Source: Pavona decussata (Eukaryota). Taken from it: a stretch of DNA of 64,000 bases. Under the pieces are notes generated by a model, which was not told the DNA's origin, searched no databases, and saw only the letters and a list, made by a program, of their open reading frames with translations. Numbering within the stretch: the first letter of the stretch is position 1; the number at the start of each line of letters is the position of its first letter. The DNA lies in assembly GCA_977016875.1 (NCBI GenBank), contig CDRNST010000093.1, forward strand, positions 5,084,001 through 5,148,000. Reading direction: 5' to 3'. This document shows positions 14,278-64,000 of this stretch, piece after piece. The position numbers were made by a program, and so were the translations under genes.

Positions 14278-17200
14278 ATGGGGATTGTAGTGTCCAAGAA
14301 GAAAAAGAAACTTCAGCTGGAACAAAATGAGGTATTTTCGTAATTTTACTTTCAGTCTAAGTACTGCTGTCTGCTGACTGTTGACAACAAAACTCACGAC
14401 CAAGACGATTGAAAGCTTTATTCGTCCCTTTTCTTCCCTCCCTTTCATCCATCTCCTATCTTCAATCTGGAAAAGCCATCCCGGCACTCTGACACTAATT
14501 GACTAGTCTCCGTAACATCACTGAGTAAAATAGCAACTGGCAGGGCTTCCCTCCACTAGTTCTTTAGAGAGTTATGTTCTTTCTATTTCTAATGTTCTTG
14601 GTACTAAGATGTTTTCTTTTTACTGAGCTTTTAGTTTAAGTCCCCCCCCCCCCCCCCCCAATACTATTTTTATTATCTACACCATCTCCATGTTAAATTT
14701 TCATAGTCCAAACAATAACTGCATATTGGGCAAGTTTGCAACTGAGAAAAAAAAGGAGCTGACAAAAATGCTTATCAGCCCCAAATGTTTTCGGGAGTTT
14801 TGAAAAATGGATCTCTGGACTAACTTGTTTTTCGGGCATTATAGAAAATTGAAATCTTTTTAATTTTATACTTAATTTTGTAGACAAAGACAAGGGAGGG
14901 GAAAAGAAAAAGTCGCGAAAGCGTAAATCTGAAGCAGGTACGAGGTGCAGCTGGAGCATCCGAAGAAGACGAGAGACACATTGCCGAGGAACAGGAAGAA
15001 AGCGAGAAGCTTGAGGAGGCGCGAACGTGTGATGATGAGGAGGAAGAAAATTCAGAACAGGAAGATGAAGAAAAGGAAGAGAATGACAACGAAGACGAAA
15101 GTGATGAAGAGGAGGAGAGTGATAACAAAGAAGAACACGACGAAAATTCCCAGGACGAGGAAGAAGAAGACGAAGAAAAAGACGTAACAGAAACGAAAAT
15201 CTCTAAAGTGCTTGCAAATTACAGTGAGAAATTACAGAAAGCTTTGATGGGCGATCTGGATTGTGACTTTCCGGAGAACGTTAAGGTTGTTCGAATCTTC
15301 ACGAGCTCTACGTTCACTGGTAAATATTTTTAGTTACAAGGGCAGAAAAATTGTTTTCGGGAATCCCTCTGCCCTTCTGTACTGATGGGGGTTTCACGAA
15401 AAGTCTATTGGTTTGTAACACAACTCCTTTCCCTTAAGGTGATTCCATTGAATTGCGTTGCGTATTATTAATGCGCATAATTTCTTACGTCATTAGAAGG
15501 ATACAAGAAGTGGTAGATAACGAAGCCTTGCAAACTTATTAATTATCCATCATCAAATAATTTAACTGGATGAATTACAAACTAACAAATGTCGTGTACA
15601 AGAGGAGGTCTGCTATTTGAACATATCAGAACCCTGTTCAGTGAAGTCCCGGTCAGGAGTTCCTCTAGTGAGCAGTATTTTAACCATCACATGAACGTCA
15701 TCCATAATTTTCTATAAAATTCTATTTAGATACGTCTGTGGAGCGTAACACCCTGATGGAGCGAGTATACCCTCGACTGAAGTCATACTGTCAAGAAAGA
15801 GGCTACGACTTCCAAGTGGTGGACATGAGATGGGGAGTCCGGGACGAGTCCACTGATGATCACATGACCACTGAACTCTGCATGAGGGAGCTGCGTGCAT
15901 GTCAGAAATTATCAACTGGACCCAACTTCATAGTGAGTTTCAGATCCAAAAGAGAAAGTTAGCCAGTTTCTCATAGCACACGCCTCTAAGATCACTCGTT
16001 ATGTCGGTCTCTGTCCTTCTTCATCTATTTGCATTTAGAAAGGAGATTATGTCCATAAATTACTGCTTTTTACATAATAGCTGTTTCTCGTCACTCGAAA
16101 GTTTACAAATTCGCTTCATTTAAGTGTTGACTAATTGCATTTTATATTTTGCCAGATATTAGTCCAGAGTTAACGGTATGGATTTTGATCAATGGACCCT
16201 TCTCCAAAATGGCGGCCGAAAATTCAAATAAGTTAAAATAAAAAACGTATACCAGCACTAGAAAGAGCACTTTTACTTTAGTAACCCTGCAAATTTTCAG
16301 CATATCAGGTGTAATATCAGCTGAAGTATGACGTATAACCCAGTCATACAAACGTCTGTAAATTTGTCAAATTTCATCTTACATTCCCCAAGCTGGTATA
16401 ACACCTAATATGCTGAAACTTTGCAAGGTTCCTCAAGTAAAGGCGTTCTTTCCAGTAAAGGTATCAGTTTCTCAGTCATTCAGTTCAATTGTAACTCATT
16501 CAAATCTGTTGCCGCCATTTTGGAGAAGGGTCTATTAAGTTTGTTTAATGCATAATTGTGGGTGCATGGTTTTACCATCAAATTTAAAGAAATCTTACTT
16601 TGCCTATTTTCAGACCTTTTTAGGGCAGAAATACGGCTACCGCCCTTTCCCAACCAAAATCATTGCTTCTGAATTCGAGAAACTCCTTGGAGCAATCGAC
16701 AACAAAGACGATCACCAACTCCTAAGACATTGGTTCTGGAAAGATGATAACGCAGTTCCCGCCCAATATGTCTTGCAACCAATCACATCACTGCTGCCTC
16801 ACTATCGTGACTATGAGAACAATGAGTTGCGTAAGAAGGCGTCCGGTGATTGGTGGGCAGCGTTTGAGAGAATGCAGGTTGTTTTCAGGATGGCTGCTGA
16901 CAAGGCTTTGGATAATAAGAGTGAGCGACACAAGTACTACATGTCAGGTATGACAGTATTAAAAGCTGGAGATGATAAAGGTTTTAGCCGCATTTTAAGG
17001 ACAGCACACCTAAAAGGAGTACTGATAACTCCTAGCGTATATATTGTCAGAGACCAGGGACGAGTTGCATAAAACTTAACGACGGGCGTAACTGCTATCG
17101 TCAGACGTTAAAATACTGAATGTTACTTGGCTGAAGGTCTGGCGTTAGCAGTTACGCCCGACGTTAAATTTTATGCAACTCACCCCAGGTTAACAGCTTT

Positions 17201-20200
17201 TGCAGCAACGGAGATTACCAACGCAATTACAGTGTCCTAAATTTGTTAAAAGCGCACTCAAAATTGCAAACGTTACCAGTTAAAAATTTCTTCGATACAT
17301 AGTTTTGTTTTTTCTCCTTTTGCGAGATGGGTCATGAAATTCTATGACGCCTGTGTGAATTACTTGCCTTTGTTCCCTTTTCCTTCGGTTTGTGATCTAC
17401 AATTCCTTCAAAAATCAATCACACTTTAGATACATCATTCTGGCTATATTCCAATTAAATCGACTAAATTCATTGTGAACGTCGTTAATTTCAGTATTTC
17501 GCGTTCTCCTGTAGTAACCGAGGATGAAATCCGTCGAGGTATTATCAATGCATCTAATCCTTCCAAACACTGCTTCTGGTTCAAGAGAGTCATCCCTGAT
17601 CTTGGAACAAACATCGATGGAAAAAACGCTGGAAAGTACATTGACAAAACGTGGGGAGACAACGCATCTGTAGATGAAACTGCACAGAAACTTCTCAGCG
17701 TTCTCCGAGAGAAAGACCTTCCACGTGCCTTACCAAGCCAAAACATTGTGACTTACAACGTTAAGTGGTCTGACAATGGCGTGAATCCCTCAGCATTACC
17801 AGAACATGCAAAATACATTGAGAAACTGTGCGAAGACTTTTATGCCACTTTAACAAAGATGATTGACGACGGAATTACGGAAAATGAGACGTCTGACTCG
17901 AGAGATCCATTTGCTGAAGAAATCTTCCAGCATGGTTCATTTTGTCAGAAGAAGTGCAAATCATTTCATGGGCGTAAACAGTTTCTGGAAGCGGCTCAGA
18001 AGTCCTTGGTAGAACACGAAAGGCATATGGTCGTCTTGTACGGGGAATCCGGTTGCGGGAAAACGTCAATAATGGCCAAAGTTGCTACGGAAGTGAAACC
18101 GTGGGTGCAAGACCAATCCGCTATAGTCATTTTGCGATTCATTGGCACATCACCGGAGTCATCTGGTATCAGACCTCTCCTGAAGAGCATATGCATGCAG
18201 TTGTGTAGGGTTACTGGACAGGACACAACAGGTATTCCAGAGGTAACTATTTAAACTTGATTTTTGTACTGTGAAACGCGGTTTGTTGGCAATGTAATTC
18301 ATTTATAGAGAGGAGATGAATGATATTTCATGGGCTTGGTTAATATCCACCCCATCCTTGTCTGCTACTTGGTTACGTGATTGCAATTAATATGATATTC
18401 TCACACACATTTGAAAAAGCTAAGTCGAATTCAACCTGTCATCCATGAACAAGAGCATCTCATCAAATACGTTAGTCAACTTGGAGTAATTAAGAGAACG
18501 AAGAAGAGAACGGAAACGCCACAAGGACGTAGAGGCGAATTCATTGTCTCCGATGTAAATTCTTTTCCTTTATTCTAAATCAGAACTGAATGATGTAAAT
18601 ATTTTCAATAGGACATGGAATCCCTGAAGGACTATTTCCAAGAATGCCTGGAAAAGTCAGCGGAAAACAACCCCGTCGTTCTGGTTTTGGATTCGCTGGA
18701 TCAACTTTCCATCGATCATGGAGGACGACAAATGGACTGGTATCCAAGAAACCTACCGCCCAATGTGTATGCTATCCTTTCAACTTTGCCTGGCCAAGAA
18801 CACCAAGCGTTACCAAGTTTGAGAGTAAGATATAAAGCTTTTATAACTTCAAAGAAGTATGCCGGACAACAAGTGATCCTTTTAATTGCTTTTAAGTAAT
18901 GAGCTCCATGTGTCTGTTGAGCAAATTTGTCAATGCAATGATTCAAGTTTAAACTTCTAGTCACGTCTTCAAATATGTCAGGTGGTGTTTTATTTCAGTT
19001 TTACTTTTACAAGAGTCATTTATGGGTTAATTTTGCTTATTCTCACTGGACTTCCTATTCCACTGCATACTAAATAGCCAACTTGTTCACGCAAGAAAAA
19101 CAGCTGTTATTTTCATTGCTTAAGGTAGCCCAAGCTTGCATACAGATTTTCTGAAGGTAAACGTTTTGTTCACATGTTTTATTAATCTTAGACTATCCTA
19201 CCTGGTGAGTGCTTTCTGGAGGTACCAAGGATCCCCTTAAATGAAGCAGGTGTTATCCTTGACAACTGGCTGAAAGCGGCTAATCGTACCATCCTTCCAA
19301 AACAGAAAAGCTATGTGATGGATTCCTTTCAGAAGTGTCCTCTTCCACTCTACCTCAAACTTGCCTTCGACGAAACCTTGCGATGGAAGTCTTACACTCC
19401 CGACTCCGATATTCATCTTGAACAGAATGTAAGAGAAATCATCGACGACTTGTTTGAACGACTGGAAAGACGACATGGCATACTTCTTGTCAGCCATGCC
19501 TTAGCTTACATCACTGCCTCCAAGAATGGTTTAACGGAGCCCGAGCTGGAAGACCTCCTTTCCTTGGATGACGAAGTTCTGAATGACGTATACCAGTACT
19601 GGACACCACCAGTCAGAAGACTTCCGCCGTTGCTATGGATTCGTATTCGATCGGACATTGGAGACTATCTGATCGAGCGAGGGGCCGATGGCACCCAAGT
19701 GGTATTCTGGTATCATCGTCAGTTTATAGAAGCCGCTCGAGAACGATACCTGAAAGATCAGCAAGCGGAAAAGATTCATGCCAACATGAGCGACTACTTT
19801 CTTGGCACGTGGTCTAGTGGTGTGAAGAAACCATTTGTAAGTAAACAAGGCAAGGAATTATCCATGGATAGGCTAGTACCCAAACAACCTCTCATGTTCG
19901 ACTCACGTGAAGACAAACCGATTTTCAATCTTCGCAAGTTGAGTGAATTGCCTTTCCACCTTTTGTATTCCGGAAATTTGGAACAAATGAAAGAGGGATG
20001 TCTTTGCAACTTCGAATTCCTTTTAGCAAAAATACAAGGGCTCTCTTTGCAGGCTGTCGTGGGTGATTTTTCATCGTATCTCGACGCAAGGCCTGACGAT
20101 GACGACGTGCAACTCCTACACGAATGTTTACAACTCTCCGCCCATTCTCTCTCCAACGAAAGCAGACAACTTCCCACTCAGATAGTTGGTCGAATGTACA

Positions 20201-22485
20201 ATTTTCTGCAGAGGCAGGAACAATACCCTGATGTTTACAAGGTTTTGAATCAAGCATTGAATCCTTCGATTGACTGTTTCCTTCCCAATCGAAAGTGCCT
20301 GACAGCACCTGGGGGAGCACTACGTGCTGCAATTGGCTTGAGACAGTTCGGTACTGATTTCATCAGTATGGCTAAAGACAACCGCACAATTGCAGTCACA
20401 AGTCAGTCCTCGGAAGGACTTGTCATTAAAGTAATTGATTATCGCAGTGGAAGAGAGCTTCGAAAGTTTACCATACAAGAACCTACGGAAATGTACAGCA
20501 CGAATTTCAACCAGATAAGCCAAAAGGATCCCGATCTGCTGCTTCTTGCCGGGTCTCACAAGATTTATTTGCTCAGTACTTTGACTGGGCAAATAATCCA
20601 AGAATTCGAAGTAACCGATGACGAGTGGTTTTCCTATTATCCCCAAGCTCCAGTTTCGTACGCGAAAGATGAGAATTTGATAGTTGCTTTGTGTCCAGAC
20701 GCATTGAAGATCTGGGAAGTAAAGAATGGCACATTGCTTCACCATCTACCTTTAACAGATGTAAACACAGAAGATGAACTTGGCAGCCTAGATGCACGTG
20801 GTGAATACGCTGTTTACAACATTCGTGGACAGAATACTGTGCACTTTGTCGATGTGAAAATTGGCAAAGAGGTGGACAAGATCACTATAAACTACCCCCC
20901 AAAAAATGAAGAATCAGTCTTCATCAAGGAAATCAAAATAACATCCTTGGATCAAGTGGCTGTTATCCCATCCTCCTTCGATAACTTACGCCTATACGAT
21001 CTTTCTGGAAGTCTCATTCGCGAGCTAACTAATTTCAAGATGCAACAGGGTCTACATCGATTGCAGATCACTGACGATGGCAAAAAGGTGGTGACTGCCG
21101 ATGTTTACGAAATCTGCATCTTAAATCTGGAGTCAGGAGAAATGGAAAGATGCCTCCGAAGCCCAATTTTCCGTTTACGAATTTACACACGTGATGGAAA
21201 AAACATTTTAGCTATCGGTCAAGATAACATCCTCCGTGTCTATGACAAAAGTCGAGAAGAAGAAGATGAAAATCAGATGGACACTACTCTCAACGAAATT
21301 CAAGGCAACACCGTCGCTGACCAAATAACCACCATTTCATCTAGCTTTGATCGGCGCCATGTCCCCACAACGGTTATGATGCAACTTAAAAACGAGATCC
21401 ACCTCTGGGATGCACTAAGTGGTAAACGAGTTCGTCGACTGATGAACCTAACGGTATTTCCGAATCCTATTCGCATGTGTACCGCCACACAAGGAGTTGG
21501 TTTCATCTTTGACCAGAACCTTCCACACTACAAGGTGTTCAACTTTAAAGAGGGAACGATTGAGAGAAATTTGGATGGAAAGGCGTGCAAAAGAATGAAT
21601 GCTTTTGGATTCATTGACGAGAAACACATGATATCGTTTTCTCGAGGACGGAGAAATGTGAAAGTGTGGGATGTTGACAGTGGAAAAGTAGTGAAAGTGA
21701 TAAAGTTTACAGAAAAGCGTCGCTTTGAGGACCTGGTGATCAGCAACAATGGTCAGATGGTTGTGTGTTGCCAAGCAAGCCAAATGACCCAGCACACTGA
21801 CAAAGAGCTGTGCTTGATCGCCATCGACACAACCAGCTTCACCCACAAGTTTCTGAGACAAGAAGGAGAACAGTTGTCCCTCTTTAACGCAAAGATATCA
21901 GATGACGGCAAATATCTGGTTAACTTAGTCCAGTATTCACAGCCACTACTTTGGAATCTTCTAACCGGCAAGCTGGTTTGCAAGCTCTTCAATGCAGAAG
22001 CATACGAAACAGCTAGTGCCGTTGCAGTTTCAGGATCCTCCATGACAGCCATCACTGCAGGAAATGACATCGGTATCAAAATCTGGAGTGTCGAAAGCGG
22101 CCAGATTACCCGCACCATCACCTGCCCTGACGTTTCTGAGGTTAATGTCTCGCCTGATGGAGGAGCAATCATATCGAGATCTGCAAATTCAAACAGCTTC
22201 GACGCGTGGGACATGAAGACGACGAAACACCTGGCGTCCTTTACGACAGATGGTTCTCCAAATCATGTGAAAACTATTGGAGACAGGATCGCACTAGCGC
22301 TGGGAGAGAACCCAAATCTAATGGTTCTCCATCTCTACCGACCTGGCCACAAAGAGGTAGAAGAGATGAAATCGCCATACGATGGTCTGTCCACAGAAGT
22401 TACGATTGCGGGCTTCCAAGAGAGGCTTACTGTTGAAGACGGCTTGGATGATGACAAGGATGACGATGACAGCTATATCTGTTAA
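14278..22485 (+). CDS. NWD2-like: DUF4062-NACHT-WD40 STAND NTPase (NWD1/NWD2-like), paralog 1, ~1753 aa, 7 coding exons
   Basis: Exons 14278-14331, 14884-15319, 15730-15932, 16614-16947, 17515-18242, 18612-18824, 19192-22485; all GT-AG and frame-consistent (5262 nt). DUF4062 motifs VRIFTSSTFTD..ERN, DMRWG, FLGQKYG, SVTEDEI; Walker A GESGCGKTS; Walker B VVLVLDSLDQL; LPLYLKL and RRLPPLLW helical/winged-helix motifs; WD repeats (LKIWEV, IHLWDA, VKVWDV, IKIWSV). Confidence 0.92.
16191..16536. mobile_element. ~345-bp MITE with AATAGACCCTTCTCCAAAATGGCGGC termini (intron 3 of paralog 1)
   Basis: Terminal and long internal inverted repeats; same family at 42790-43016 and 59329-59671. Confidence 0.85.
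17058..17185. mobile_element. Short palindromic MITE (Harbinger-like, CAG TSD)
   Basis: GAGTTGCATAAAACTTAACGACGGGCGTAACTGCTA ... TAGCAGTTACGCCCGACGTTAAATTTTATGCAACTC flanked by CAG/CAG. Confidence 0.7.
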
Positions 22486-23890
22486 AACGCTCGCATGATT
22501 TCTGTGGAGTACACACAAGATGGAACAGTATGGAAGGTTTAGCACAAAAATTTAAAGTCAAAATAACAAAAAATTGCAGTTTGCATTTAATCGGTACTTT
22601 AGAATTCAGCATCTTTTTTACTACACTCATGAAGTCGTAAAATTTTGAACCTTTGATCTTTATAATCAGTGGTGATTAGGTCAGACATATTTCTAGTTAA
22701 TGAATTTATAAAGAAGTACATATAGTCGGACTATAAGGTGTGCGAGCCGAAAAGCAATCAACTTATCGTTCACAAGTCTATGCAAAAGCAACCACGTGCA
22801 AGGAAGACGTTTTAAATATACTGTAGTTCTTAGAAATTCGGGCTCCTCGATCGAAGAAAAAAAAAGGGAACAAAGCCCATTCCGTGTATGTTGCTCCTGA
22901 TATGACCTACAGACAACAAGCTTCTTATAGCTTTCTTCGCTTGCTTACTACATCGATTTTAAGAAATAAATAAACCTTGAACAGTGTGAGAAAGACTGGT
23001 CAGGGTGAGTCTGCAGTTGTAGTATGTTAAAATTTCTGTTTGTCTCATGAACTCTTTTACGCGTGTTGGAAAATGATAAGAAAAAAAACAACGATTAATA
23101 TAATTGGCTTCCTTCTCAAGGCTGAAGTTCTGTTTTCTGGTCGAAAAATCCCATCTCCTCGAGACCAGCCAAACGAGCGAGATCAGGGATCTGCAACTTA
23201 TTAGCATAAGCCAACAACTGTATGGACGGTTTTTCTTTGCTATTTTCGCATTTCGCATCGTTGACTTCACTCTCTTGAGGACGGTACGCCATTTTGGAAT
23301 TTCGCGGGAAAATTGGTCCACCAATATGGCGACCGGAAATTATGTGACGTCACGTGAAAACGATCTATCCTATCTGGCCGCAAATTAGACTTCACCTTTG
23401 GTGGTCCAAACGTTATCAGTTGTTATACAGTTTTGTAAACTTTTCTTGTGCTTTTCCTGTCCTTTCCTACCTTGAAGGTAACTATATGCGTTGTTTTTCG
23501 CGACTGTTTGACACAACGCGAAAATAAAATTAAAATTGCTGCTATAATTTAAAGCAGCTGAGCTAAATTTACCCCATTTTACAGGTTACGTAACAAACTA
23601 AAATCATTTTGAATCTGCTATCTTCCTTAGTCATTTCTTCACCTGACATGATTGCTGAGTTTACAACAAGAGCAAAAGATTGGTCAGTGTACTTTTTTGC
23701 GTTAATGGACAACGAAAATATAGTTCAATAAAACACGTTTCTTTGATATCTCTTGTTCATTTCTTCCGGATTGCTCGTTTTCTTATTTAGTCCTGTCCCA
23801 GAACTTGCTCTTTCCCCACCCAGGGTTCAGGGCGAGGCAAGAGGGTGTTCTGGAACAGGACTATTTCTGATAATTGTTTAAGCAGGTCCT

Positions 23891-24071
23891 TATAGTCCGT
23901 TTTCATTCACGTGACTACCGGCCATATTGGTTCACTGAAACAAAAGAAAGTATTTGCATAAAAATAGAGTTCAATTCCCAGAGGTTTAGTTTGAGACACC
24001 AACATGGCCGCCATTTTTTTGTTTTGGGACACCAACATGGCCGCCGTGACGTCATGTGAAAACACTCTATA
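23891..24071. mobile_element. MITE (ATAG...TTTTCA-TCACGTGAC / GTGACGTCATGTGAAAACACTCTAT family); related end at ~23320-23368
   Basis: Inverted termini plus internal CCAACATGGCCGCC repeats. Confidence 0.65.
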
Positions 24072-27000
24072 AGTAACAGTATTCACGGTGAGGTGAAGGT
24101 AGGGGATTTCAGGATCAGTTTAAATCAGTTCTCTTAGTGTTCTTCCCGGAGGATGCCCGATCAATCATGCAGGGAGGATTGCACCGGACTCGGTTTCGAT
24201 CAACTCTTTACCTTTTTCACATACGATGGATGCGTTAACTACTGAAGCAGCACCTCTTCTGCAGACATAAAACAAAATTTGTATCTCTTCTGGTCATGTC
24301 TCCAAGATAAATAAAAGCCTCATTTTTCCTGTCGCCAGAAACATCTTTGAGTTGTAATTTCTGCTAGGAATTTCTCCGGCTAAGTCAATGCTATAATTTC
24401 CGTAATACTTGGATACAATTTCTACCCTTTAGGTTCAATTCATAATCTAGTTTTGCGACCCTTTAAAATACGAAAATTTTAAATTTCATTACTGTTTTGC
24501 ATACTTCGCGTGTTACATAAACAGTCCTTTCTCTGGTGGAACCTTCCGGCAAAGCACACTTTTTGGAGCACCCCCCTCCCCCTCCCACCAACACACAAAA
24601 CGAGTAAAACCCGTTTTGCAAGATAAACAAAAGAAACAAGATAAACCTGTTTTAAGATCCTGTCGTACACAACCTTTATCTGCCCAATCCCTCTTCACAT
24701 AACCCTGTGCAGCTGGGGTTAGAAGAAGGGAAAGGGGAATTAATGAGTGAAGTGTTGACCAGTCCCTTCACTCCTTGCATAAAGAGGGATCTGAAAAGAT
24801 CGCAGAAGATAATTTGATTTAAAATAAAAGGAGCGTTTGCGTCGACATCCTTCAACAGTTGTTTCAGAACCTGTTACCCAGTCTCTCAGCAAATATATGA
24901 ATTTTTTTGAGTTGATTTATTATATTGGCTTTGACAAGATGTTCGAACAAAGCAATTTATTTCAGCCATAAATTCTTATTATCTATTACCGTGTGGCAGA
25001 TTTGACAAACAACTTGCAACTGCTGACGTTATCACCTTGTCGAAATGGTTGGATTCCGCATTCTTGAACACAATTGAAGATCCATAATGACGTATTTGCG
25101 TCCAGTAAGCTGGGCCATGTAATCTTTATTTTATTACCAATTTCAAAAGTGAGGATTAATCTACATGATACGTTGATGGCCCTAGCTATACTGAAGTGAG
25201 TTTGAGAGGAAAAATAGCATGATTATTTTTATATCTAGTTGATTGCTGGAGGTTTCTTCGCTTACTTGCTTGTAATTCGTTAACCTCGCGTTATTAAACA
25301 TGTAGATTAAGGGCGTCGACAAGATAATTTAGCTTCTTTTATTAAACTCGTGCAGAGCTATTTGGACAGCGTCTCTTTTGTCATTCAAGATCAAGTCCGC
25401 TACACAACAAAACCAAGTCGTTAAAATTACTCATCTCCAGCGCGTTTGGTTCCCTGATGGCGACAGTTTTGCCGAAATGGTAGCTTTTGAACAACATTTG
25501 AATTACCCCTCTTTTGCTAACTGATCCAGTCTTTGTAATACTCTGACTACTAACAGAGAGACAGCTGCAGTCAACGCATTAGCTTTGTAGTGTGAGCTAA
25601 ATCACCCATTAAAGATCTTCTCAAGAAAAAGTGCCGCTAACATCGTCACATTATGTAAGCAAAATGCTTGTTTTTTTTTTTATCAACTGAATTCTGGTAA
25701 ATTTATCAACTGCACTTGACCGTACAGCCTGTCATTTGATCAACAGGGGTGTTTCGTGACATATTCCATTATTTAAAGCAGTTTGCTTATTCTAAATATA
25801 AAGCACATGAATTTTAATATCGTATTGCAGATAATTTCCATTGCCATCTTTGACTTTCATTTTCGTCGCTGCATATTGACGCTCTGAGAGGTGACAATGT
25901 GAGGAGTGGGATATTGAGAGACCAAGCGGCACACATAAGGTGAGGTTGGTATCTACATGAACAAAATGACTTAATTGCTATGCAAGAAATATTCCATCAA
26001 ACTTACATATTCTGAATATTCTTAACAACCACGAGGACATCGATTACTGAGCTTACTCGCCCGCTCAGGAGAATCAAAGGCGCTAGACAAAGCCAGATTG
26101 AACGATTTTACTCGGGACTTCTGCAACTTGAACGTCTGCTAATAGTGTCTAAAATCTCCTACATTTTACAATCTTTTCAGTAATAAATTAATGTTTTGAA
26201 CTTGGGTACATAAATCTTTCAACATGTTTCCTCGAGTCTGACAAAACAAATTGCCGAGAACGATTAAATCATTTTTTTCGTGAAATCGTTTGCATACCCA
26301 GTGTTCATACTATGTATTATCGGTTTTTTATTTATTGAGCTTTGCCAAAGGGAGAAGAAATTACAAATATATTCTACACTGTTTCATTTTAAAGGTCACA
26401 ACACCGCTTAGCCTATGTGTTTATGTTTCTCTCATCGATCTCTTAGCAACTATTACGTGCTAATTTTGTAGGCAATTCAACGTTTCCAGCTTTATCTGAA
26501 ATTTGTGGTTAATTTTCAAATTCAGGGTAACACGACACCAGTGTCTTCTTTTTTTTAAAAAAAAAATTAACGACTCAATGTAACATTTTGCGCGATTTCC
26601 AGAGTATTACTCCAATGCATGTTTACTTAAATAATTCTGTCACTCCATGTCTGTTTTATATATGAGCCAGGTGTAGTTGACATGACGTTACGAAACCTGA
26701 ATTAGCAAAATCCTTATTGGAGAGATTGATTGCTTCGTTCCCGGCACACTTCTATGTCCCCAGCTTCAAATAATTGTCTTTGTCATCCTCGGTAGGATAG
26801 CTCTGTCCCTCGATTCGATTCGATTTTGTGCCCGGGAATAACCTACTTTCTTTGTTTTCGTTCCAGTCGTAACATTTATCGACAGAAACAAAGCAAAAAA
26901 CACACTTAAAGCAAGAGTCGTGAGGAACAGAAATCGCAACTTAAGGCGTTGGCTGAGGCATGTGACTTGCAAGAAAGTTATTTTAAGAAACGCTGGCGTA

Positions 27001-28182
27001 CATGGAAACACAGTTCCGGTTCCATTGAGTTAACAGAGCGGCGCTAAATGACCGCCTTTAAAATATTCAATTCTTAATTTAGCGATAGGACCATGCACGA
27101 AAGCGCTCAATTGAGTTCCACTCGGGTGAGCTGTATTGCAATGGTTTTGGATGAGGTCTATCAAAGTAGCTTTTACAAATCGTGGAATTAGGGCCTTGAC
27201 ATCAGGTATAATTCTGCCCTTTTGGACAAACAGCGCTTTTGAGTGATTTACATTGTACTTTACGAGATGTGGCGCTAACTTGTGACCTTAGGGTAATTTG
27301 TTGCTATTCCAGTTTCTATATTCTAAGTAATCTACAGGGGACTAAACTCTGCTTCATTCACCCTTTCAACCCCTCAGCCTCAACAATGACTAACATAAAA
27401 CGCCTCTTTTCAGTATTCCACCTTCATCAAACGTAAAGTCATACGTAGATACAGAAAGAGAAAACCAAAAATGTAATGTGTCGATGTTTAAACAAATCGT
27501 CCTTACTAGAAACATGAGAAACATATTGAGAACATTTAAGAGAATATAGGTGCTGCTCCTTGGGATTTATAGTTCAAAATGCTTTGATCCTTTCGTTTGT
27601 CCTTATGTTGAATCGCCATGAAATAAGACATAACAACTAAAAAAAAACTTTCAGGATTCTGAGCCTTTTTTAAAAGTAATTTTGTAAGTCAAGGGTTATG
27701 TTCAGCTCTATGTTCAGAACATTTTCCGTCGGAAATTATTTGTGAATTGGTGCGCTCGTTGGAAAGTTGTAAGGCCTTGATTTTCAAAATTTTACTTCTG
27801 AAAACGTCGCTGCGGTGAAAACTGTTTGCCTGTTTGACGTTCAATCAAATATCAAAGTATTTAAGTTTTCAGTCAATGCTTAAACGACGAATCGATTCCG
27901 GTTTTCCGGCAGCCACTGTTTCTGCTTGTGCCTGCCCTTGCGTTTTTTCCGCTTGCCAAAGAACTCTTCTGTTTCATCAAAGTTAAAAACCAGCTTTTAA
28001 CGTGGAGAGATTACTCTAACGACCGAACGCATTTTAATTTGAACACCTTTTCATAAGTGCTAAACGAGGAGTATTCCTCTAGCGCCATAATTGCCGGGAA
28101 GTTATCTGATCGTTGACTTAACCAAACTTATATTTGCAGGTGAGGTAGAAACCGGTTAAAACCATATCGACCGGTTGAAACA

Positions 28183-31100
28183 ATGGGGATCATTCTGTCT
28201 AAGAAGAAAAAAAAAAGCCAGCAGAGTTTTCAGGTATATATGAGCTTACTGATAAAGTTTGGTTAGGTCTTTGGACGAAAATCAATGTCCGTTTGCCAAC
28301 ATATCACTTACAATGGCTAATTGTGTCGAGTTCCCTTTCAAGCAAATAATAGTAGACTTTTGTTTTAGTACGATAGTTAGAGTCCAACTTCTTTGCAAGA
28401 AAGTCGTGTAAAGTAAATAATGTAGAGTTTTTTTTTTAAAATTGTGTACAACTCAGTGTTAAAGTCTATAGACATTGTACCACAACTTATCTTAAGTAAG
28501 AAGAACTAATACTATCCCTAAGAGTAATCAAAAGTTTGTCTGCCTGAAGACAGCATCTTTTTGAATATGGCTCTGTATTCTGAAGCTTGTAAGGCAAGTG
28601 TCTCTAAATCCAGTTGCCCAAGAATATGTGTAGATCGTACATCGTAACCCTTAAAAGCAGTAATTCGTGCGGCTCGATTTTGCAGTTTTTAGAGTCTGTA
28701 GCAAACCCCTTAGTCTAGATTGCCCCAGACAACATCGCAACAATCGAAAACAGGCTGATTAAAGATTTAAAAATGATATTCAGGATATCCATAGGTACAC
28801 CACCAAGTGCCTGTTTTAGACCATTTATATTTATCGGTTTACTTAAGCACAAAGCTTATCAACATGGTCTTTCCATTTAAGGTTTTTGTCAAGGTGAACT
28901 CCAAGATATTTTGTGTTCTGAACCGAACTCGTTTAAATTCGTTCTCACCAATCATAATTGGAAAAATCTACCTACATTGGACAACTTGATACATATATTT
29001 GGTTTTTGTCATATTGAACCAGAGTTTGTTTGCTTAGAGTGTGTATCAGAGAGAGAGAGAGAGAGAGAGATCACTGGATTTGTTTAACATTAGTTACTCT
29101 TTTCTAACGTATACCCTATCAGACGTTTGCAGTGTGCTCCCGCTCTTTCTTTTGCTCTTGTTATGCTCTACAACTGAACAAGGAGAGAATAAAAGCCAGG
29201 CCAACTACAGTGAGCAAATTATTGGTGATTGAATTGTTGCTTTTATTTTGGGCTGTCTACATGCAGGTTGCTTATCCTCAAATACAACAGAATGAGACTC
29301 CCATCAATCAGGACAGAGAAGAATCTGAAGAGAACCAGGAGGAACGTGACAGCGATAGTGACAAGAACTCCACTGAACGGAACGAGGACGATGAAACACA
29401 ATCGGACAAGAGTTCTGGAGTTCTGAGTTTAGGAATGAAGGAAGACAGCGACAATGACGACGATGAACTGGACAAGAAAAGTAGACGGAGTTCTTCAGCA
29501 GGAAGCAAAAGAAGTAGCTCGTCACGAGAAGAGGAGGCCAAAGACGAACAGGACGAGAAACCGGACGAGGACAAAGCTGAAGATGCTGGCGAGGATGAAG
29601 TTGCAGATAACTTGAGCTATGAAGAGAAAGTGAAGAAGGCCTTGACGGGAGACATGAACTTCAATTACCCAGAAAAAGTTAAAATTGTCAGAGTATTTAC
29701 AAGCTCTACCTTTACAGGTACATTGCGAAATCTGCGTTTAGATATGTTCAGTAAAACGCGCCTGAAACTATTAACTGATTTAAAACTGGTCATAGCAAAG
29801 GCGGCGCCCATTACAATTGTTATGTAAAACACTGCTGAAACAACGCTTTCTAATATGACACTATTTAAATTCACTCAAGATATCTCCTTGGCAGTTAACT
29901 TACTCCATAGCTTAGGGCCTCAGTACCTTAGCGAATGTTTCTCATATATTACCGTTTTAATTCTTGGTGGCAAAAAGTTAGATTGGTTGGCTTAATTGAA
30001 ATGTAGAGTCACATTGAGTCCTCACAACAGAAACGTTAAACCTATGGTATAAACCGAAGTACAAAGATGTAACGTTAATGCAAATTTCCAGTTTCCATAG
30101 ACACTCCATCCTCGGAGACATAGGGGTTTTAATTCGTCTCGTCTCGACTTACTGCCCCTTGGCATCCGAAGATGGAAAGATAGACTCCTAACGAATTAAA
30201 AGACCTCTGAAACGGTGTTGATGATTAAGGCTCGAGACAAACGCGTCCCTGGATTACATATGCTGTTTGTACTAATAACCATATGCTTTTGATTCTTATC
30301 TTAACTTTTTAGACACATCTGTGGAACGTAACACCCTAATGGAGCGAGTATACCCTCGATTGAAGTCATACTGTCAAGAAAGAGGCTATGACTTCCAAGT
30401 GGTGGACATGAGATGGGGAGTCCGGGACGAGTCCACTGATGATCACATGACCACTGAACTCTGCATGAGGGAGCTGCGCGCATGTCAGAAGCTGTCAACT
30501 GGACCCAACTTCATTGTAAGTTAACGAAAGCATAATTCAATTATTTCTGGGTTATTTTATGGTTTCTGAACAACATTTAATGTTTATCTTATCAGACCTT
30601 CTTGGGACAGAAGTATGGCTATCGACCCTTTCCGGTCAAGATCGTTGCTTCTGAGTTCGAGAAGCTTCTTGGAGCAGTTGAAAATAAAGACGATCAACAA
30701 CTGCTCACAAACTGGTTCTGGCGAGATGACAACACAGTTCCCGCCCAATATCTCTTGCAACCAATCACATCACTGCTGCCTCACTATCGTGACTATGAGA
30801 ACAATGACTTACGTAAGAACGCGTCCGCTGATTGGTGGACAGCGTTTGAGAGAATGCAGGTTGTTTTGAGGATGGCAGCTGACAAGGGTTTGGATAAAGA
30901 AAGCGAGCGACACAAATACTATATGTCAGGTTTGTTTCTGAAAGAAAGTGAATATATGAAAATTTATACATTTGAACTGCTGAAGAAAGAATGAATAAGT
31001 GTATGATCATCGAAGTTATACACGCAACGTTTAAGCAGTTGTAAAAAGAAAGCCTGAAAGGCTTTCTTTTCGCAACTGCTTAAGTTGAGTATATAACTGC

Positions 31101-34100
31101 GATGATCATTCACTTCTGCAACTTTATCATCTATTTAATACTAAGGTGAGACGTACCGTGAAGAGGTGATACGTCAAGAGTAGTGAAGAGTATTCTAATG
31201 TTAGGGTTAGGGTTAGGACACAGGAAGGATCCCTTTTATGTATACGTGTATATACGTTAATGCACCTTATGCATAGTTTGTGCGTGAATGCGGTCCTTTG
31301 TCCTGACCTTATCCGGTCGGGAGTTTGAAATTCGGGATGAATATACATGCAGATGTCAGTAACCAGTTCTTCGTCTTCATTCATGAAGGATGAACAATAA
31401 CATATAATTTTTTTTCCTCTATTAACAGACCACTTACATATATTTTTTTTCCTTTAGTGACAGAAGATGAAATCCGTAGAGGTATCATAAATGCCGTTGA
31501 CCAAGAGAAGCGCTGTTTCTGGTTTAAAAGGGTCATCACCGACATCGGTGATAACATGGGAGACTCCAACGCTGGCAAATTTGTCGACAAAACCTGGGGG
31601 AATCCCTCCACTGTGGATGAACCTGCCCAGCAGCTGCTCAACAAGCTCCGAGAAAAGGACCTTCCCGAAGTGTTGCCCAGCAGTAACATCATTCAGTACA
31701 ACGTTAAGTGGCACAACAATGGTATAGATCCAAGTGCCTCACAAGAACATGCCCAGTACATTGAAAAAATTTGTACTGACTTTCACGACGCACTAACGGA
31801 AAAAATAAATCGAGGTATTGAAGAAGACAAGTCGATTCACACTGAGGATCCTTTAACCGATGAGATATTCCAACACGGAACGTTCTGTAAGAAGAAATGC
31901 GAGTTATTTCACGGCCGTCACGAGTTTTTGACGACCGTTAAAGAGAAGGTGAAGAAAGACCAAATCGCTGTGTTGTTTGGGGAATCCGGATGTGGAAAGA
32001 CTTCCTTGATGGCTAAGATTGCGATGGAAGTAAAGAAATGGTTGGATACAGAAGAGGCTACCGTTGTTGTTCGATTTATCGGGACAACTCCAGATTCATC
32101 AGATGTGCGATCCCTGATACGTAGTATCTGCCAACAGATCTGTAAGGCAAATGTCGCAGAAGACTCAGAAGAAAAAACCGTGCCACAGGTAAACGAATAC
32201 AGTAAAATCTCGCGAGTAAGTACCTGAAGTTTTGGAACCTGTTAGACTAAAATTTCTAATTTCAACACCCTTTAAAGCCTTAAATCTAAATCAGGTTCTT
32301 ATTTATAACTTAAATAAAATATAGCATATGAAAAGGCCAATATTTCGTATCCTCTAATTAGTTATAGTAAATACAAAAAACTTGACTTATTTAGGTGAAA
32401 CAATTAAGTCGTTCTGTATAACAATATTGTGTCAGTTAAGGCTGGACTGTTCAAAGTGCCATATTGTTTTCACTCTATACTAGAGAGTACACGTATTTTG
32501 TTATCAAGAAAAATGAGAATGTGTTTATGAACCTATATAGCCTACATTTCTGTTAAACACCATTTATATAAGAATCTGTTGAGGCTAACTTGAAAAAAAA
32601 ACGGTTTTTACTTGCGGGTTTATATAGAGTACAGAAGTGCCTCAGAGTAATTGTGTTAAACGTTTGCAGCAACATGTTACTGGGGCGTTTGTGACTCACA
32701 CCTTTGTCTTATAAATTGATTTTCTTTTCAGGATATTCGATCCCTGCTTGAGTTTTTTCCGAAATGTTTGGAGGAGAATGCATTGTCTTCCAGCCCCACG
32801 GTGCTTATCGTTGACTCGCTGGATCAGTTATCAGATGATGATGCAGGAAGAGAGTTGGATTGGCTTCCAAAGCAGCTACCAGACAACGTTTACATTATCT
32901 TGTCAACACTTCCTGGAGAGGAGTACGTCTGTTTACCCAAACTGCAAGTATGAGACTTTATTAAACGCTTTTCCGAAGCTCTTGTCTGTTCAGTTTGGTA
33001 TTTTAGCTCCGTATTTTGCTTCAGATGTTTCGAATGAACGTCTCGCACACTATGTTTTCTCGTTGACGATATTGAGAGATGACGAGATTAGTTTCATGTT
33101 CTATGTCAAGGATGCAAAAAAACTGATAATGAAAGACGAAGCCACTTCGGGCTACAATGACGTTCTTGCAACTGTCTTCTGATGAACTTTGCTGTTCATC
33201 ATATACACGGTGTAACTGATTGATGAAAGCAATAAATAACTCACGAAAATCGGTGTTAATCTGGAAAACAATTGATACCAATTAATTAATCGATTAATAT
33301 CGGTAATCGATGAAAGACATTTTTGTGATTTTTTATCGATTAGAAATCGATCATCCATGATGGTCATTGACTAGTGTTAATTGTTATTGATTATTATCGA
33401 TTATCTTCACCTCTCCCTTTAATTAATCTAAATCCAATCAATGAAATGGTCGTTGTAGTATCTATTGAACGTTAACACGATCTTCCATTGTTGTTGATGT
33501 TGTTGGTGCCAACGAAACAGAAAAAATGTTATTTAGATAGTTTAAGTATAATCTTGTTATACAATTTATGTTCCATTTGCAGGAAAAATACGACAATGCG
33601 GTCCTCTTAGAAGTTCCAAAGATGCCTGTCGACACTGCAAAAGAAATACTTGACAATTGGCTGAAATCATCGGGACGAGTGCTGCAGAGTGAGCAAGAAA
33701 AAATCGTTTTAGAAGCATTCAAAGAGTGCCCATTGCCCTTGTACTTGAAGTTGTCCTTTGACGAAGCCTGTCGTTGGAAATCGTATACGCCTCTTGAAGA
33801 CACCAGGCTGGCTCCAACAATCAAAGGGATTATTCATGACCTACTTGACAGGGTAGAGAGACTCCATGGGAAAGTCCTAGTCAGCCAAGCTTTAGCTTAC
33901 GTCACCGCGTCCAAGAATGGCTTGACAGAACCCGAGTTAGAAGACATCTTATCACTAGACGACGTAGTTCTTAATGATGTATATCAGTACTGGACACCCC
34001 CCATTCGACGGTTGCCACCCCTGTTATGGATCCGAATACGGTCGGACATTGGCGACTACCTCATTGACCGAGGTGCAGACGGTGCACGAGTTATATACTG

Positions 34101-37100
34101 GTATCATCGCCAGTTCATCGAGGTGGCCCGCGAGCGATACCTTGGAGCAAAACAAGCAGTCGGAATTCACTCAAACATAAGTGAATACTTCCTTGGAAAA
34201 TGGTCAGATGGTACAAAGAAGCCTTTTGCAGACAAAAGTGGGAAAAAAATGTCCATGGACCGTCTGATACCAAAACATCCACTTATGTTCGATGCGAATG
34301 ATGAGAAACCCATTTTTAATCTGCGCAAGCTAAGTGAGCTTCCTTATCATCTCTTGTACTCTGATCAACTCCAAACGCTTAAGGAGGAAACTCTGTTTAA
34401 TTTCGAATTCCTCCTGGCAAAAGTTCAAGCCACGTCCGTGGAAGCGCTGCAACAAGACTTCAACGCTGCCATTACCGTTCATCCTGATGACAAAGAGTTC
34501 GATCTCCTAAGTAAGTGGCTCGGGTTGTCCTCATTAGCACTCCGGGAAGACCCTCGTCAGCTGCCAATCCAGCTAATAGGTCGCTTATACAAGTACACGA
34601 AGCAGGAACAATACCCATTCTTGAAAAAGCTGTTGGAAGCTGCAAAAACACCATCTATTCCCGCTTTCATTCCAAAACAACAATGCCTGACGCCTACTGG
34701 GGGATCTCTGGTTAACTCGATTTCATACGAAGAGTTCCATGGTGGCATCGAGTACGTGAATTTCACGAGTAATTCCAAAACAGTAGTTACCTGTAACCGC
34801 GGTTCGGAAGGGCTTTGCCTCCTCTATATCGATATAAAAAGCGGAAGAAGGCAAAGGAAGGTTTGCTTTGACGTATCTGGAACGGATGTGAATTCTTGCT
34901 TTTGTGCTAAGATCAGCTCAAAGAACGACGATATCTTTCTGGCATCGGGATCCTCAGCCAATATGTTCCTCATCAACGCGAAGACTAACAAAATCTTGCA
35001 GGAATATCATCCGATGAAGAACGAACGCAACTGGTTTAGAAGCTTTCCTTCAGTTGCATTTGCAAGCGATGATGAGCTGTTGGTTGCCCTTGGGGATGCC
35101 AGTGTGCGAGTCTGGGAGACTGAGAGTGGAAAGCTTTTACATGAGATACCTGTTTCTGGAATCAATGTTGAAGAACAATTTGGTTCTTTGGATGCGAAGG
35201 GAGAAATGGCGGTCTACTGTGTCCATGGAAAGAAGACTGTTCACGTTCTTAATGTCAAAACTGGAAAGACAATTTGTAAGGTAAGTCTGAAATAATTTTA
35301 ATCTAATCTTTTACCTATCACCTTATGCAGAAGTAATCACCTTATGAGAAGTAAGCAGCATCTCTGTAACCTTACTTCTTTGGTATGCAAGCAATCTAGG
35401 GTATAATGCATGGGGTTAGGCGTCAGAACTACATGATATGTATCGCCGGTTTGACTCTGGCAGATAAAGGATTAAACGTTTGCACCTATTTGTACAAATG
35501 ACGAAGTTGTAAAAGCTTGATTAAATGATACTGGCAAATTCTTTACCGTGTCATTCTCTTCTATTTACTGTTACCCCTATCCACAAGCTGGTAGTTTTGC
35601 TTATTTTAAACGACTATCGGGATTTAAATGATATTTAGTTTAAATAATTTAACTAGCAGAGCTCTTCAACCACTATTATAAATTCTTCTTCCCCCTATTT
35701 TATTTAACTGCACAGAGGTAGTGGCCAACACGAAAGCCTTGCTCCTTTGGCCACTACGCACTTCCTCCGTAAAAGTAAAATCATTAAGTAAATGCTCTGT
35801 ACGTTGAAAAATTTTTTTCCTACTGTAAAATATTTGTATTTCGTTGTAATAAGTGTGAATAAAATTGAATTGAATTGAATTGAATTGAGTTTACAGGGAA
35901 TTTAAATTATTGATGCTGTATTCAGTGTGCCTTATTTTTCTAATTTTTTTAATTTTTTCTATCACATCCTCAGATAAATGTAGATGTGGGAAAGGAAAAA
36001 GTCATGGAAAAGTGGGAAGAACGAAAAGTTAGAGAGATACACCTGACCTCCAGACTCCAGCTACTGGTGGTGGCAGAGGGTACTCTGACGTCAAAGCTAA
36101 AATTGTACGATCCTGCAACTGGTAAGCACATCTCAGACATTCCGGACTTTGGCATCGGGCAGCATGATCGCCTCGTAGTCACTGAGGACGGAAGGGCGGC
36201 GATCGCCATCAGAAACCACTATGAACTCGTTCGATGGGATTTTGACACTGGCAACGCGACTGTGGTTGCTAGGTTACAACCAGGCTTTGGAACGTACGGG
36301 CGCAAGGGAGATTTTGTGGCGACTGCTGGGTCCGATGGAGTCCTCAGAGTTTACGATGCTAGAGAGAGTGTTGATGAAGATGAAACAGACGACGCTGCCA
36401 TTACTGACGGTTTTGCTGATTCAACATGGATGCTGACAGGTGCAGCTGACAATCGTCACGTGATCGCTAGCTGCACAGTGAAGATGATGCCCGAGATTGC
36501 TGTGTGGGATGCACTGGCTGGAATCAAAGTCCGTTCTATCAAAGCGTTGAATTTCCCTCAACCACTGCGCATGTTAAATGACAAGATAGGCGTTGGAAGA
36601 ATTGCTGTGGGAGAGTCTACCAAAAAAAATTTTGATCACTACAAAGTACTGGACTTTGACCAGGCGAAAACGCTCCGTGCGCTGCAAGGGAAGTCGAGCA
36701 AGAGGATGGAGGCCGTTGGCTTTATTGACAAACAGAAACTTATCGGGTTGTCTCAGGGAAGACGGAACTTGAAGGTTTGGGACGTGGAAACTGGAAAGGT
36801 GAGATAACACTAATGTCATGGACTGGACCGGTGTCTAGATTCTCCACTTAACAGCACACCTTAAGGATCGGTAAAGGGCTCATTTTATGGTCCCCAGTCC
36901 TTGACCATTCAGGCGTGGGACACTTATAATTGAGTTCAAAACGCTTCAGGCCACTGAGACCCCCGCCACTCGATCAGCCATGCTACGTAAACAGGTTTAC
37001 TAATTAAGTGGTCGGTGGTGGAGGCTTCACGGCTCTAAATTATGAGATTCACTGTTATACATAAACTAAGGCCTCTTTAGCTGAATGATGGGGTTTAAAA

Positions 37101-41891: not shown

Positions 41892-42789
41892 CAGATGATC
41901 AGTGTGAATGTGTTCTTTTCCGGCTTAGATGCCTAGGCTGCACCACTGTTCTATTTGGTCATTCGTGGCAACAAACGGACCTTGTAAAGATCAGATAATG
42001 AACGCACAGAACTGTAGCTTTAATACCTCTGTACATGATTTTCACGGACCACAGCCTGAGAAATGTTTTGGAGCTACAGCGTATCTCATTCTGATACTGT
42101 TGGCTGCGCCTTAGCGTGCCGGGTGCCAACAGTTTGAGGGAGCGCTACATTTTTTCTTGTGTGAAATCATTGACTAGCATTTTCTTCAATTTTTTTGTCA
42201 TCGATGTGACACCCACAACACTACCAGGGAAATAGGGAGAGAATTTTCTCTTTTGAAACCCGGCTTTGTCTCGTAATACCAGGAACGCAATCGTGACCAC
42301 TGCCAAGAATCTTGGACCTAGATGTGCTGGATAGCTTTTTCGTGGCGACGCCTTATTTTTTCTCGGTTTGTTAATTGACACTAGTATTCTATATCATTAG
42401 CTACAGTACTGGGCCCAGTTGTTCGAAAGCCTCTTACCGTTAACCTGGGACAAAAGTTTGGCAAGTCTGTTTCTCTCGTTGAAAAGCACAAGGAATCAAA
42501 GAGTTTAAAGACAGGCAAATTGAAAAGACAAAACACTGGACGAACTCAACAGAATTAATATGAACCCACTTCAGAATAAATTTATCGCGGTTATCGATAA
42601 TTGCAGAAAAAAGGGCGCCGGATTGACGAGGCCTTTCTTAGTTAATACATCTGCTAAGCATTGTTTCTAAGCATTGTCATTATAACAATGGACTACTGTT
42701 CAGAAACAATACTTAGAATACATTTTAACTTAGGAGAGCTCCATGAATCTAGCCTCAGGAGCCCATAATTAGGAACCTCTATCTGTATT

Positions 42790-43016
42790 AATAGACCCTT
42801 CTCCAAAATGGCGGCAACAGATTTGAATGAGTTAAAATTGAACTGAGTGAAAAACTGATACCAGCAATAGAAAGAGCACCTTTACTTTAGTAGCCTTGCA
42901 AAGTTTCAGCATATTAGGTGTAATATCAGCTTAGGAAATGTAAGATGAAATTTGACAAATTTACAGACATTTGTATGACTGGGGGTATACGTCATACCCC
43001 CAGTCATACAAACGTC
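42790..43016. mobile_element. Truncated copy of the AATAGACCCTTCTCCAAAATGGCGGC MITE
   Basis: Matches 59329-59510 and the reverse complement of 16340-16536. Confidence 0.8.
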
Positions 43017-45535: not shown

Positions 45536-63601
<18,066 letters not shown>

Positions 63602-64000
63602 ATATCCTTTACACTGCTAGTTTTACTGAAATTTACGTCATCCACAAATTTTCCCGTCTGGGAAAAATAAGATCTGGACAATGCTATTGTGAAAGGAATT
63701 CTCGATACCTTTCGTTTTAATGGCCACAGTCTAGATTTTCAGCAACTGACTCAAAAGTTAGAACCATGCAGCACGACAGATAGCACCACAAGAAAATGGT
63801 GGTCAGTAGGTTTATTTGAATGGTTACAGTTTGGGATTTCATCCACAGACTCAAAAGTTAGAGGAACCATCTACGGCATAATAAACATCATCACAGGAAA
63901 GTACTGCTCAGTAGCTTTCATTTGAATGGTCACACTTTAGGATTTCACCAACAGATTTAAAAGTTAGAAATACCTTGTAGAGCATAATAAATAGCACCAC
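63602..64000 (+). other. Start of a U12-type AT-AC intron of the formin gene (3' end outside the window)
   Basis: FH2 homology ends at DKFIPVMK followed immediately by ATATCCTTT; no suitable GT donor at the boundary. Confidence 0.8.
63690..64000 (-). repeat. Same ~106-bp minisatellite family as 1-560, opposite strand
   Basis: Reverse complement reads GAAATCCTAAAGTGTGACCATTCAAATGAAAGCTACTGAGCAGTACTTTCCTGTG. Confidence 0.85.

Follow-up and report, generated by a model that had tools for sequence, protein, structure and literature searches.

Why do two neighboring coral genes that have diverged to saturation over most of their length share a nearly unchanged piece of their N-terminal head? The question is raised by a stretch of 64,000 nucleotides (nt) of the Pavona decussata genome, hereafter the window, which spans positions 5,084,001-5,148,000 of contig CDRNST010000093.1 (C93) in a scleractinian coral assembly of 602 Mb. 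Two tandem NWD1-like genes, A and B, lie on the + strand of the window; the cluster begins beyond it with a further paralog, C, located 36 kb upstream of A, giving the order C, A, B. Judged by their domain content, all three are coral NWD1-like STAND proteins in which a DUF4062 TIR-like head is followed by a NACHT ATPase, an NWD1 winged helix and WD40 propellers. We conclude that the likeness is probably due to short ectopic gene-conversion tracts between these three old tandem paralogs, located inside exon 3 and most of exon 4, which would make the locus a clear, if ordinary, instance of partial gene conversion.

Exon 3 of A and B (coordinates of all features are collected in Table 1) differs at 11 of 203 bases, all of them synonymous, and contains a perfect run of 89 nt (15807-15895), as a preliminary description of the stretch had counted by eye; nonsynonymous divergence (dN) is 0, the proportion of synonymous differences (pS) is 0.23, and three of 29 four-fold sites differ. 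The perfect run of about 55 nt that had been noticed in exon 4 is likewise real (55 nt, 16771-16825 against 30753-30807), in an exon with a pS of 0.39 and differences at eight of 34 four-fold sites. By comparison, saturation is reached in the exon 2 tail and throughout exons 5-7, with a pS of 0.74-1.0 and ~65% of four-fold sites differing, and Fisher tests on silent-codon differences against exons 5-7 bear out the expectation that silent divergence is significantly lower in exon 3 (P = 1e-10) and exon 4 (P = 2e-7). The exon 7 block that the preliminary description had used as a control does differ at its silent sites (pS 0.87) despite 94% protein identity. Also as described, the WD40 parts are barely alignable, with no nucleotide match beyond ~20040, and the third introns, 681 and 80 nt long, do not align. 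Paralog C, compared with A and with B, has the same low-divergence pattern in exons 3-4.

In sliding-window analysis, silent divergence falls into two valleys, at ~15735-15900 and ~16686-16866, which lie inside the exons without filling them, and climbs again towards both edges of intron 3. The earlier view of an exon-restricted homogenization is not upheld, as the apparent tracts are short, lie within exons and are not bounded by exon edges. Nor is the module kept identical, as had been proposed: paralog synonymous divergence (dS) in the exon 3/4 segment is 0.27-0.55, the exon 4 proteins of the paralogs are 84% identical with amino-acid differences that persist, and both segment ends retain states specific to each paralog in every genus compared. 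A distant fourth DUF4062 paralog on the - strand of another contig (C72, ~2412674-2412864), with an exon 3 protein that is 66% identical and silent sites that are saturated, stands outside the exchange.

We compared these genes with loci from Oculina patagonica (A and C, adjacent), two coral assemblies from ENA (sp2 and sp3, each with A, B and C), Acropora digitifera (C) and a Nematostella relative. Protein searches identified orthologs of gene A in other corals at 78-85% identity. Over exons 5-7 the copies sort cleanly into A, B and C orthologs (ortholog pS ~0.5-0.6, paralog pS ~0.8), and dN in these exons gives the triplication 2.4-3.5 times the age of the split from Oculina. By this sequence measure the three genes arose before at least four scleractinian genera separated, and the preliminary description was right to regard the paralogs as old. 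All eight within-species paralog pairs from four genera repeat the pattern, with 13-25% of silent codons differing in exon 3, 23-32% in exon 4 and 57-67% in exons 5-7, and the low exon 3/4 difference is significant in each (P = 1e-7 to 1e-14). Moreover, the order of distances is reversed between the two parts of the genes: in exon 3, within-species paralogs are closer (0.187) than between-species orthologs (0.254), whereas in exons 5-7 they are farther apart (0.62-0.67 against 0.37-0.41). The order C-A-B is kept in Oculina, sp2 and sp3, and the distance from C to A, 36 kb here, is <4 kb in Oculina, ~163 kb in sp2 and ~345 kb in sp3.

Quartets formed from paralogs A and C of our coral and of Oculina place this reversal at individual sites. 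Sites supporting a grouping by species, by orthology or the third pattern number 9, 1 and 1 in exon 3 and 14, 4 and 2 in exon 4, as against 5, 97 and 16 in exon 5 and 16, 258 and 19 in exon 7. Parallel shifts in codon usage do not account for the signal, as species-pattern sites in exons 5-7 are no commoner than those of the third pattern. Sites supporting orthology within the exon 3/4 segment occur only at exon 3 nt 3-12 (a C-type Phe codon) and exon 4 nt ~293-327 (a C-type one-codon deletion and motif), in all genera. Approximately unbiased (AU) tests, in which exons were entered as separate partitions, reject the orthology tree for the whole of exons 3 and 4 with preset boundaries (delta lnL 20.7, p = 0.027) and more strongly for a core of exon 3 nt 13-201 and exon 4 nt 1-285 (delta lnL 55.9, p = 0.0003), for which the species tree is accepted (p = 0.17). 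For exons 5-7 the unconstrained tree is that of orthology, and these exons reject the species tree (delta lnL 3050, p = 7e-8). The prediction that exons 3-4 would group by species and the later exons by paralog therefore holds for exon 3, the first ~285 nt of exon 4 and exons 5-7, and fails for the end of exon 4, which groups by paralog; in the same way, the quartets and AU tests support the proposed ectopic conversion of the head module in exon 3 and most of exon 4, and not at the segment ends, which stay paralog-specific. Similarly, an Arg-to-Lys change in exon 3 and several exon 4 residues are common to Oculina A, C and a third paralog.

A candidate mosaic allele, and with it a candidate polymorphic conversion tract, was found in another individual. 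A 1870-nt RNA contig from run X5 differs from gene A at 0 of 119 positions in exon 2, 2 of 332 in exon 4 and 12 of 721 in exon 5, but at 12 of 204 positions in exon 3. Its exon 3 carries the letters of C at 15767, 15782, 15785, 15803, 15806 and 15896, those at 15767 and 15782 being private to C among 11 coral sequences, and retains the letters of A at 15869 and 15887. A chimera of the assembly graph cannot have made this join, because the stretch identical between A and C to the left of the patch is 23 nt long, shorter than the 31-mers of the assembler. Contigs, not raw reads, from further runs have the B/C state at 15806 and 15896 in an A context. These contigs suggest that conversion may still be ongoing. 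The X5 contig also has a private change, 15784 C>T, which would turn Ser into Phe in an otherwise invariant peptide.

Introns bear no trace of exchange. The length of intron 3 is paralog-specific across genera (A 681/718/714/278 nt, B 80/80/124 nt, C 243/358/417/71 nt); paralogous introns align with z <0 in six of seven pairs and 3.5 in one, and orthologous introns align weakly, with z up to 9.5. Homogenized introns were thus sought in the intron 3 alignments of four genera and none was found. Taken jointly, the spared introns and the two valleys speak for short DNA tracts whose limits are the limits of homology. The locus is not explained by one recent partial duplication or unequal crossover, since neither introns nor exon 2 are shared and four genera show the pattern. 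The GC content of third codon positions is somewhat raised in exon 3, at 0.54-0.64, and is 0.48-0.58 in exon 4; over exons 5-7 nearly every copy stays at 0.42-0.51, with 0.55 in exon 6 of one copy. Yet the core contains invariant codons ending in A or T, and purely GC-biased conversion is rejected on that ground.

The mechanism we propose is that ectopic tracts of tens to ~200 nt have passed repeatedly from one paralog to another, within exon 3 and within the first ~285 nt of exon 4. The cores of these exons would be the sole stretches alike enough to pair, owing to an extreme protein constraint combined with a lower silent-site rate, and tracts would halt before the unrelated introns and the paralog-specific segment ends, leaving the introns, exon 2 and exons 5-7 to evolve as ordinary old paralogs. 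Most likely this forms a self-reinforcing loop, in that likeness permits occasional conversion tracts and the tracts in turn preserve likeness. Several observations weigh against this account. Orthology is rejected only at the borderline by exon 3 alone (p-AU 0.052) and is not rejected by the whole of exon 4 alone (p = 0.18), and the limits of the core used in the strongest AU test were picked after the sites had been seen. The copies of sp2 and sp3 are not neatly grouped by species, which indicates that the history is a mosaic and not one of full homogenization. The candidate mosaic allele comes from a single contig assembled with k = 31 and not from raw reads, and of its 12 exon 3 differences five lie too close to the exon ends for listing, while RNA support for splicing and expression covers gene A, not gene B. 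Finally, the exon 3/4 cores change two to three times more slowly than the baseline at silent sites between genera, which weakens any argument from raw dS.

This slowdown deserves separate consideration. At exon 3 nt 76-135 the silent difference is 0.08-0.09 within species, 0.12-0.16 between orthologs and 0.19-0.26 against Oculina; at exon 4 nt 151-255 the corresponding values are 0.14-0.20, 0.16-0.22 and 0.14-0.20, compared with a baseline in exons 5-7 of 0.62-0.67 (saturated), 0.37-0.41 and 0.37-0.45. It is common to all three paralogs and to at least five scleractinian genera, and six codons of the exon 3 core that end in A or T show little or no variation across 12 sequences from five genera. 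The core is kept in Acropora (2-5 of 16 silent codons differ); against Nematostella the effect is weak (6 of 14), and the distant paralog within the same genome does not show it (6-7 of 12). Unbiased conversion does not reduce divergence between species. Because conversion cannot lower between-genus silent divergence, a nucleotide-level constraint or a low rate acts as well. Among candidate causes, RNA structure is rejected, as exon 3 folds no better than its shuffles (z +0.76), and no Rfam match was found in 14800-31200. Dual coding fails because, depending on copy and frame, 7-92% of synonymous recodings (mostly 30-65%) still reach the open alternative frame across exon 4 or the antisense frames in exon 3. 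Nor is the slowdown just a matter of GC-biased conversion, given the invariant codons ending in A or T. A discrete invariant block of small-RNA size is not present, the longest invariant run in 12 sequences being 14 nt, and a general effect of protein conservation is rejected by the conserved exon 7 block, whose ortholog silent divergence (0.374) is at the baseline. In plants, miR482/2118 targets conserved NLR motifs. By analogy, the slowdown could mark a nucleotide-level element common to the A, B and C mRNAs, such as a small-RNA target co-regulating the cluster, which conversion would help to keep, although we think this rather improbable.

The slowdown also provides the best case for the view that no DNA was copied between the genes and that the silent sites of the exon 3/4 cores are simply under selection or slow to mutate, since orthologs and non-orthologs of different genera differ at 0.12-0.26 of silent codons, as against the 0.37-0.45 baseline, and the codons ending in A or T are conserved. 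The preliminary description had allowed that synonymous conservation between distant species would speak for such a constraint instead of conversion; that conservation is found in part, and the orthology tree is still rejected. We consider constraint on its own quite unlikely: given the age of the triplication, a rate of 0.3-0.7 of the baseline still predicts paralogs to be more divergent than orthologs, the reverse of what exon 3 shows, and the nine-to-one excess of species-grouping sites in exon 3, the common derived amino-acid changes of the Oculina paralogs and the candidate mosaic allele all run counter to it. There is next to no room for an assembly collapse or polishing artefact, in favor of which nothing was found: the copies differ at 10-16 exon 3 sites and so are not collapsed, independent assemblies from four different genera have the pattern, exon 3 of A is linked to A's own intron 2 in DNA contigs from another run, and the exons of A are connected by RNA contigs. 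Conversion templated by spliced transcripts, that is by complementary DNA (cDNA), would homogenize flanking exons and spare introns, as is seen here; however, the bases adjoining the exon 3/exon 4 junction are the least homogenized of both exons, and a junction-crossing tract would delete intron 3, yet its paralog-specific lengths are kept in all genera. As ordinary DNA tracts ending at the limits of homology account for the same facts, we regard a cDNA route as very unlikely.

If DNA tracts were copied, they may still have been favored for their function, with heads kept alike for mixed oligomers or a common partner, as the preliminary description had supposed. TIR-like NADase domains, including DUF4062, are activated by oligomerization (bioRxiv 10.64898/2026.05.01.722283), and a similar argument, from the compatibility of head domains in multimers, has been discussed for groups of zebrafish NLRs (Howe et al., 2016; PMC4852459). 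Against this, all scleractinian copies have one and the same exon 3 peptide except for Ser/Phe and Arg/Lys exchanges, which are paralog- or lineage-specific, and a few copy-private changes, and the peptide is ~85% identical in Nematostella, without conversion between those lineages, while exon 4 differences between paralogs persist. Conversion adds nothing at the protein level, because the exon 3 peptide is already almost invariant without it, and purifying selection is by itself enough to account for the likeness of the proteins. Selection for head compatibility thus appears unlikely as the cause of the exchange; the co-oligomerization rationale is not needed for protein identity and remains speculation, and conversion would instead be a passive by-product of sequence identity.

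Table 1. Features of the NWD1-like genes A and B in the window, with positions counted from its first letter. Pfam cut-offs: PF05729 (NACHT) 26.7 bits; PF25469 (NWD1-type winged helix) 27 bits; PF23586 (propeller) 33 bits.
Feature	Positions	Strand	Remarks
Gene A exon 2 tail	15184-15319	+	DUF4062 start; ends ...SSTFT plus first base of a split Asp codon; RNA-contig joint 15318/19 to 15729/30; pS saturated against B and C
Gene A exon 3	15730-15932	+	203 nt, 67 codons of DUF4062 core; probable converted stretch ~15742-15910
Gene A intron 3	15933-16613	+	681 nt, not homogenized; high-copy repeat ~16187-16609
Gene A exon 4	16614-16947	+	334 nt; low silent divergence ~16686-16900; 3' end ~16906-16947 with paralog-specific states
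Gene A exon 5	17515-18242	+	End of DUF4062 region, NACHT P-loop; PF05729 29.2 bits; RNA-contig joints; saturated against paralogs
Gene A exon 6	18612-18824	+	RNA-contig joints; saturated against paralogs
Gene A exon 7	19192-22485	+	1097 codons plus stop; NWD1-type winged helix (PF25469 67.5 bits), WD40 propellers (PF23586 42.7 bits)
Exon 7 control block of A	19519-19671	+	Pairs with 33910-34062 in B; 51 codons, protein 94% identical, silent sites saturated
Gene B exon 2 tail	29582-29717	+	By sequence comparison with A and C
Gene B exon 3	30313-30515	+	203 nt, aligned to A exon 3
Gene B intron 3	30516-30595	+	80 nt; sp2 ortholog also 80 nt
Gene B exon 4	30596-30929	+	Aligned to A exon 4
Gene B exon 5	31458-32188	+	NACHT P-loop; Pfam NACHT (PF05729) 33.4 bits, nSTAND1 37.7 bits
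Gene B exon 6	32732-32947	+	Saturated against paralogs
Gene B exon 7	33583-35292	+	Winged helix (PF25469 61.5 bits) and first WD40 blades; 3' boundary approximate
Gene B further WD40 coding stretches	within 35953-36804 and 38136-39215	+	

Each of the five splice junctions between exons 2 and 7 of gene A is supported by RNA-derived contigs from two public runs. In paralog C (C93:5062244-5070141), one exon holds both the start codon and the SSTFT motif, and the gene closes with a single exon of 1153 codons. In the Nematostella vectensis relative (P0054) an additional intron splits the equivalent of exon 3 after ...GYEFQ. High-copy repeats occur in introns 3 and 4 of gene A (16187-16609 and 17033-17314), with a summed contig depth that reaches 1e5 in a DNA run; the first of these repeats makes up about half of intron 3 and has copies at 42787-42997 and 59329-59672. 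Another repeat family occurs at both ends of the window in inverted orientation (47-492, 6653-6934 and 63706-64000; 74-88% identity).

Pfam scans of the window genes were run exon by exon, over a DUF4062 head that is split among exons 2-5. Taken singly, these exons give at most faint NPHP3-domain matches for the head, and the propeller matches of gene B are all sub-threshold. The Oculina ortholog (P0014), whose exon 3 peptide is that of gene A except for the Arg-to-Lys change, matches DUF4062 (PF13271) over residues 140-360 with 32.6 bits against a cut-off of 24.7, and matches the solved TIR-like domain of human TEP1 (PDB 11gz_A, E 1.6e-10) over the first ~95 residues only. Full-length coral relatives carry the NCBI name NWD1-like, and the domain order is the same as in animal NWD1, NWD2 and TEP1, which have the DUF4062 ('NIR') TIR-like NADase head. 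Recent work identifies DUF4062 as a TIR-like NADase domain activated by oligomerization in bacteria and in human TEP1, and human NWD1 and NWD2 had no NADase activity in assays (bioRxiv 10.64898/2026.05.01.722283; 10.64898/2026.09.04.749371). The term effector domain, used in the preliminary description, is reasonable in this light. Enzyme activity has been shown for TEP1 and bacterial DUF4062 members only.

Partial, domain-differential conversion in clustered NLR-type genes is already known from the zebrafish NLR-B30.2 family (Howe et al., 2016; Open Biol 6:160009; PMC4852459), which likewise consists of clustered NACHT-type STAND genes with conversion of gene parts only, likewise inferred from silent divergence and discordant domain trees. 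There, the NACHT and B30.2 exons of hundreds of young genes are converted (PMC4852459). The coral cluster, by contrast, comprises three very old syntenic paralogs with tracts of up to ~200 nt in two exons of the DUF4062 head, its NACHT and sensor parts are untouched, and it has the additional silent-site slowdown between species. In fungal STAND genes the exchange reportedly concerns the WD40 repeats and generates diversity. The coral genes differ from these NWD/HNWD genes in that the WD40 sensors diverge freely and the N-terminal head is exchanged. Paoletti et al. (2007; PLoS One 2:e283; PMC1805685) describe concerted evolution of the fungal genes (het-e/het-d), which are likewise of NACHT-WD40 type and exchange sequence between paralogs.

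Coral tandem duplicates surveyed by Noel et al. (2023; Genome Biol 24:123; PMC10236652) are likewise old, clustered and syntenic between genera, and gene conversion was considered very rare in corals, as judged by conserved exon/intron structure. Tracts internal to exons would escape that measure, and intron-conservation criteria will accordingly overlook tracts such as those described here. Our literature search found no report of such conversion for coral NWD1-like genes. The locus thus adds a four-genus example of conversion limited to a few hundred bases of very old tandem paralogs, in a group where conversion was reported as very rare (PMC10236652), and the silent-site slowdown poses a small question of its own beside it. 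For work on this family, trees or dS derived from the DUF4062 head of coral NWD1-like genes mislead on orthology and age. As the TIR-like NADase-type head has recently been tied to bacterial antiphage defense and to human TEP1, these genes may also be of interest for the study of immune-module evolution in early animals.

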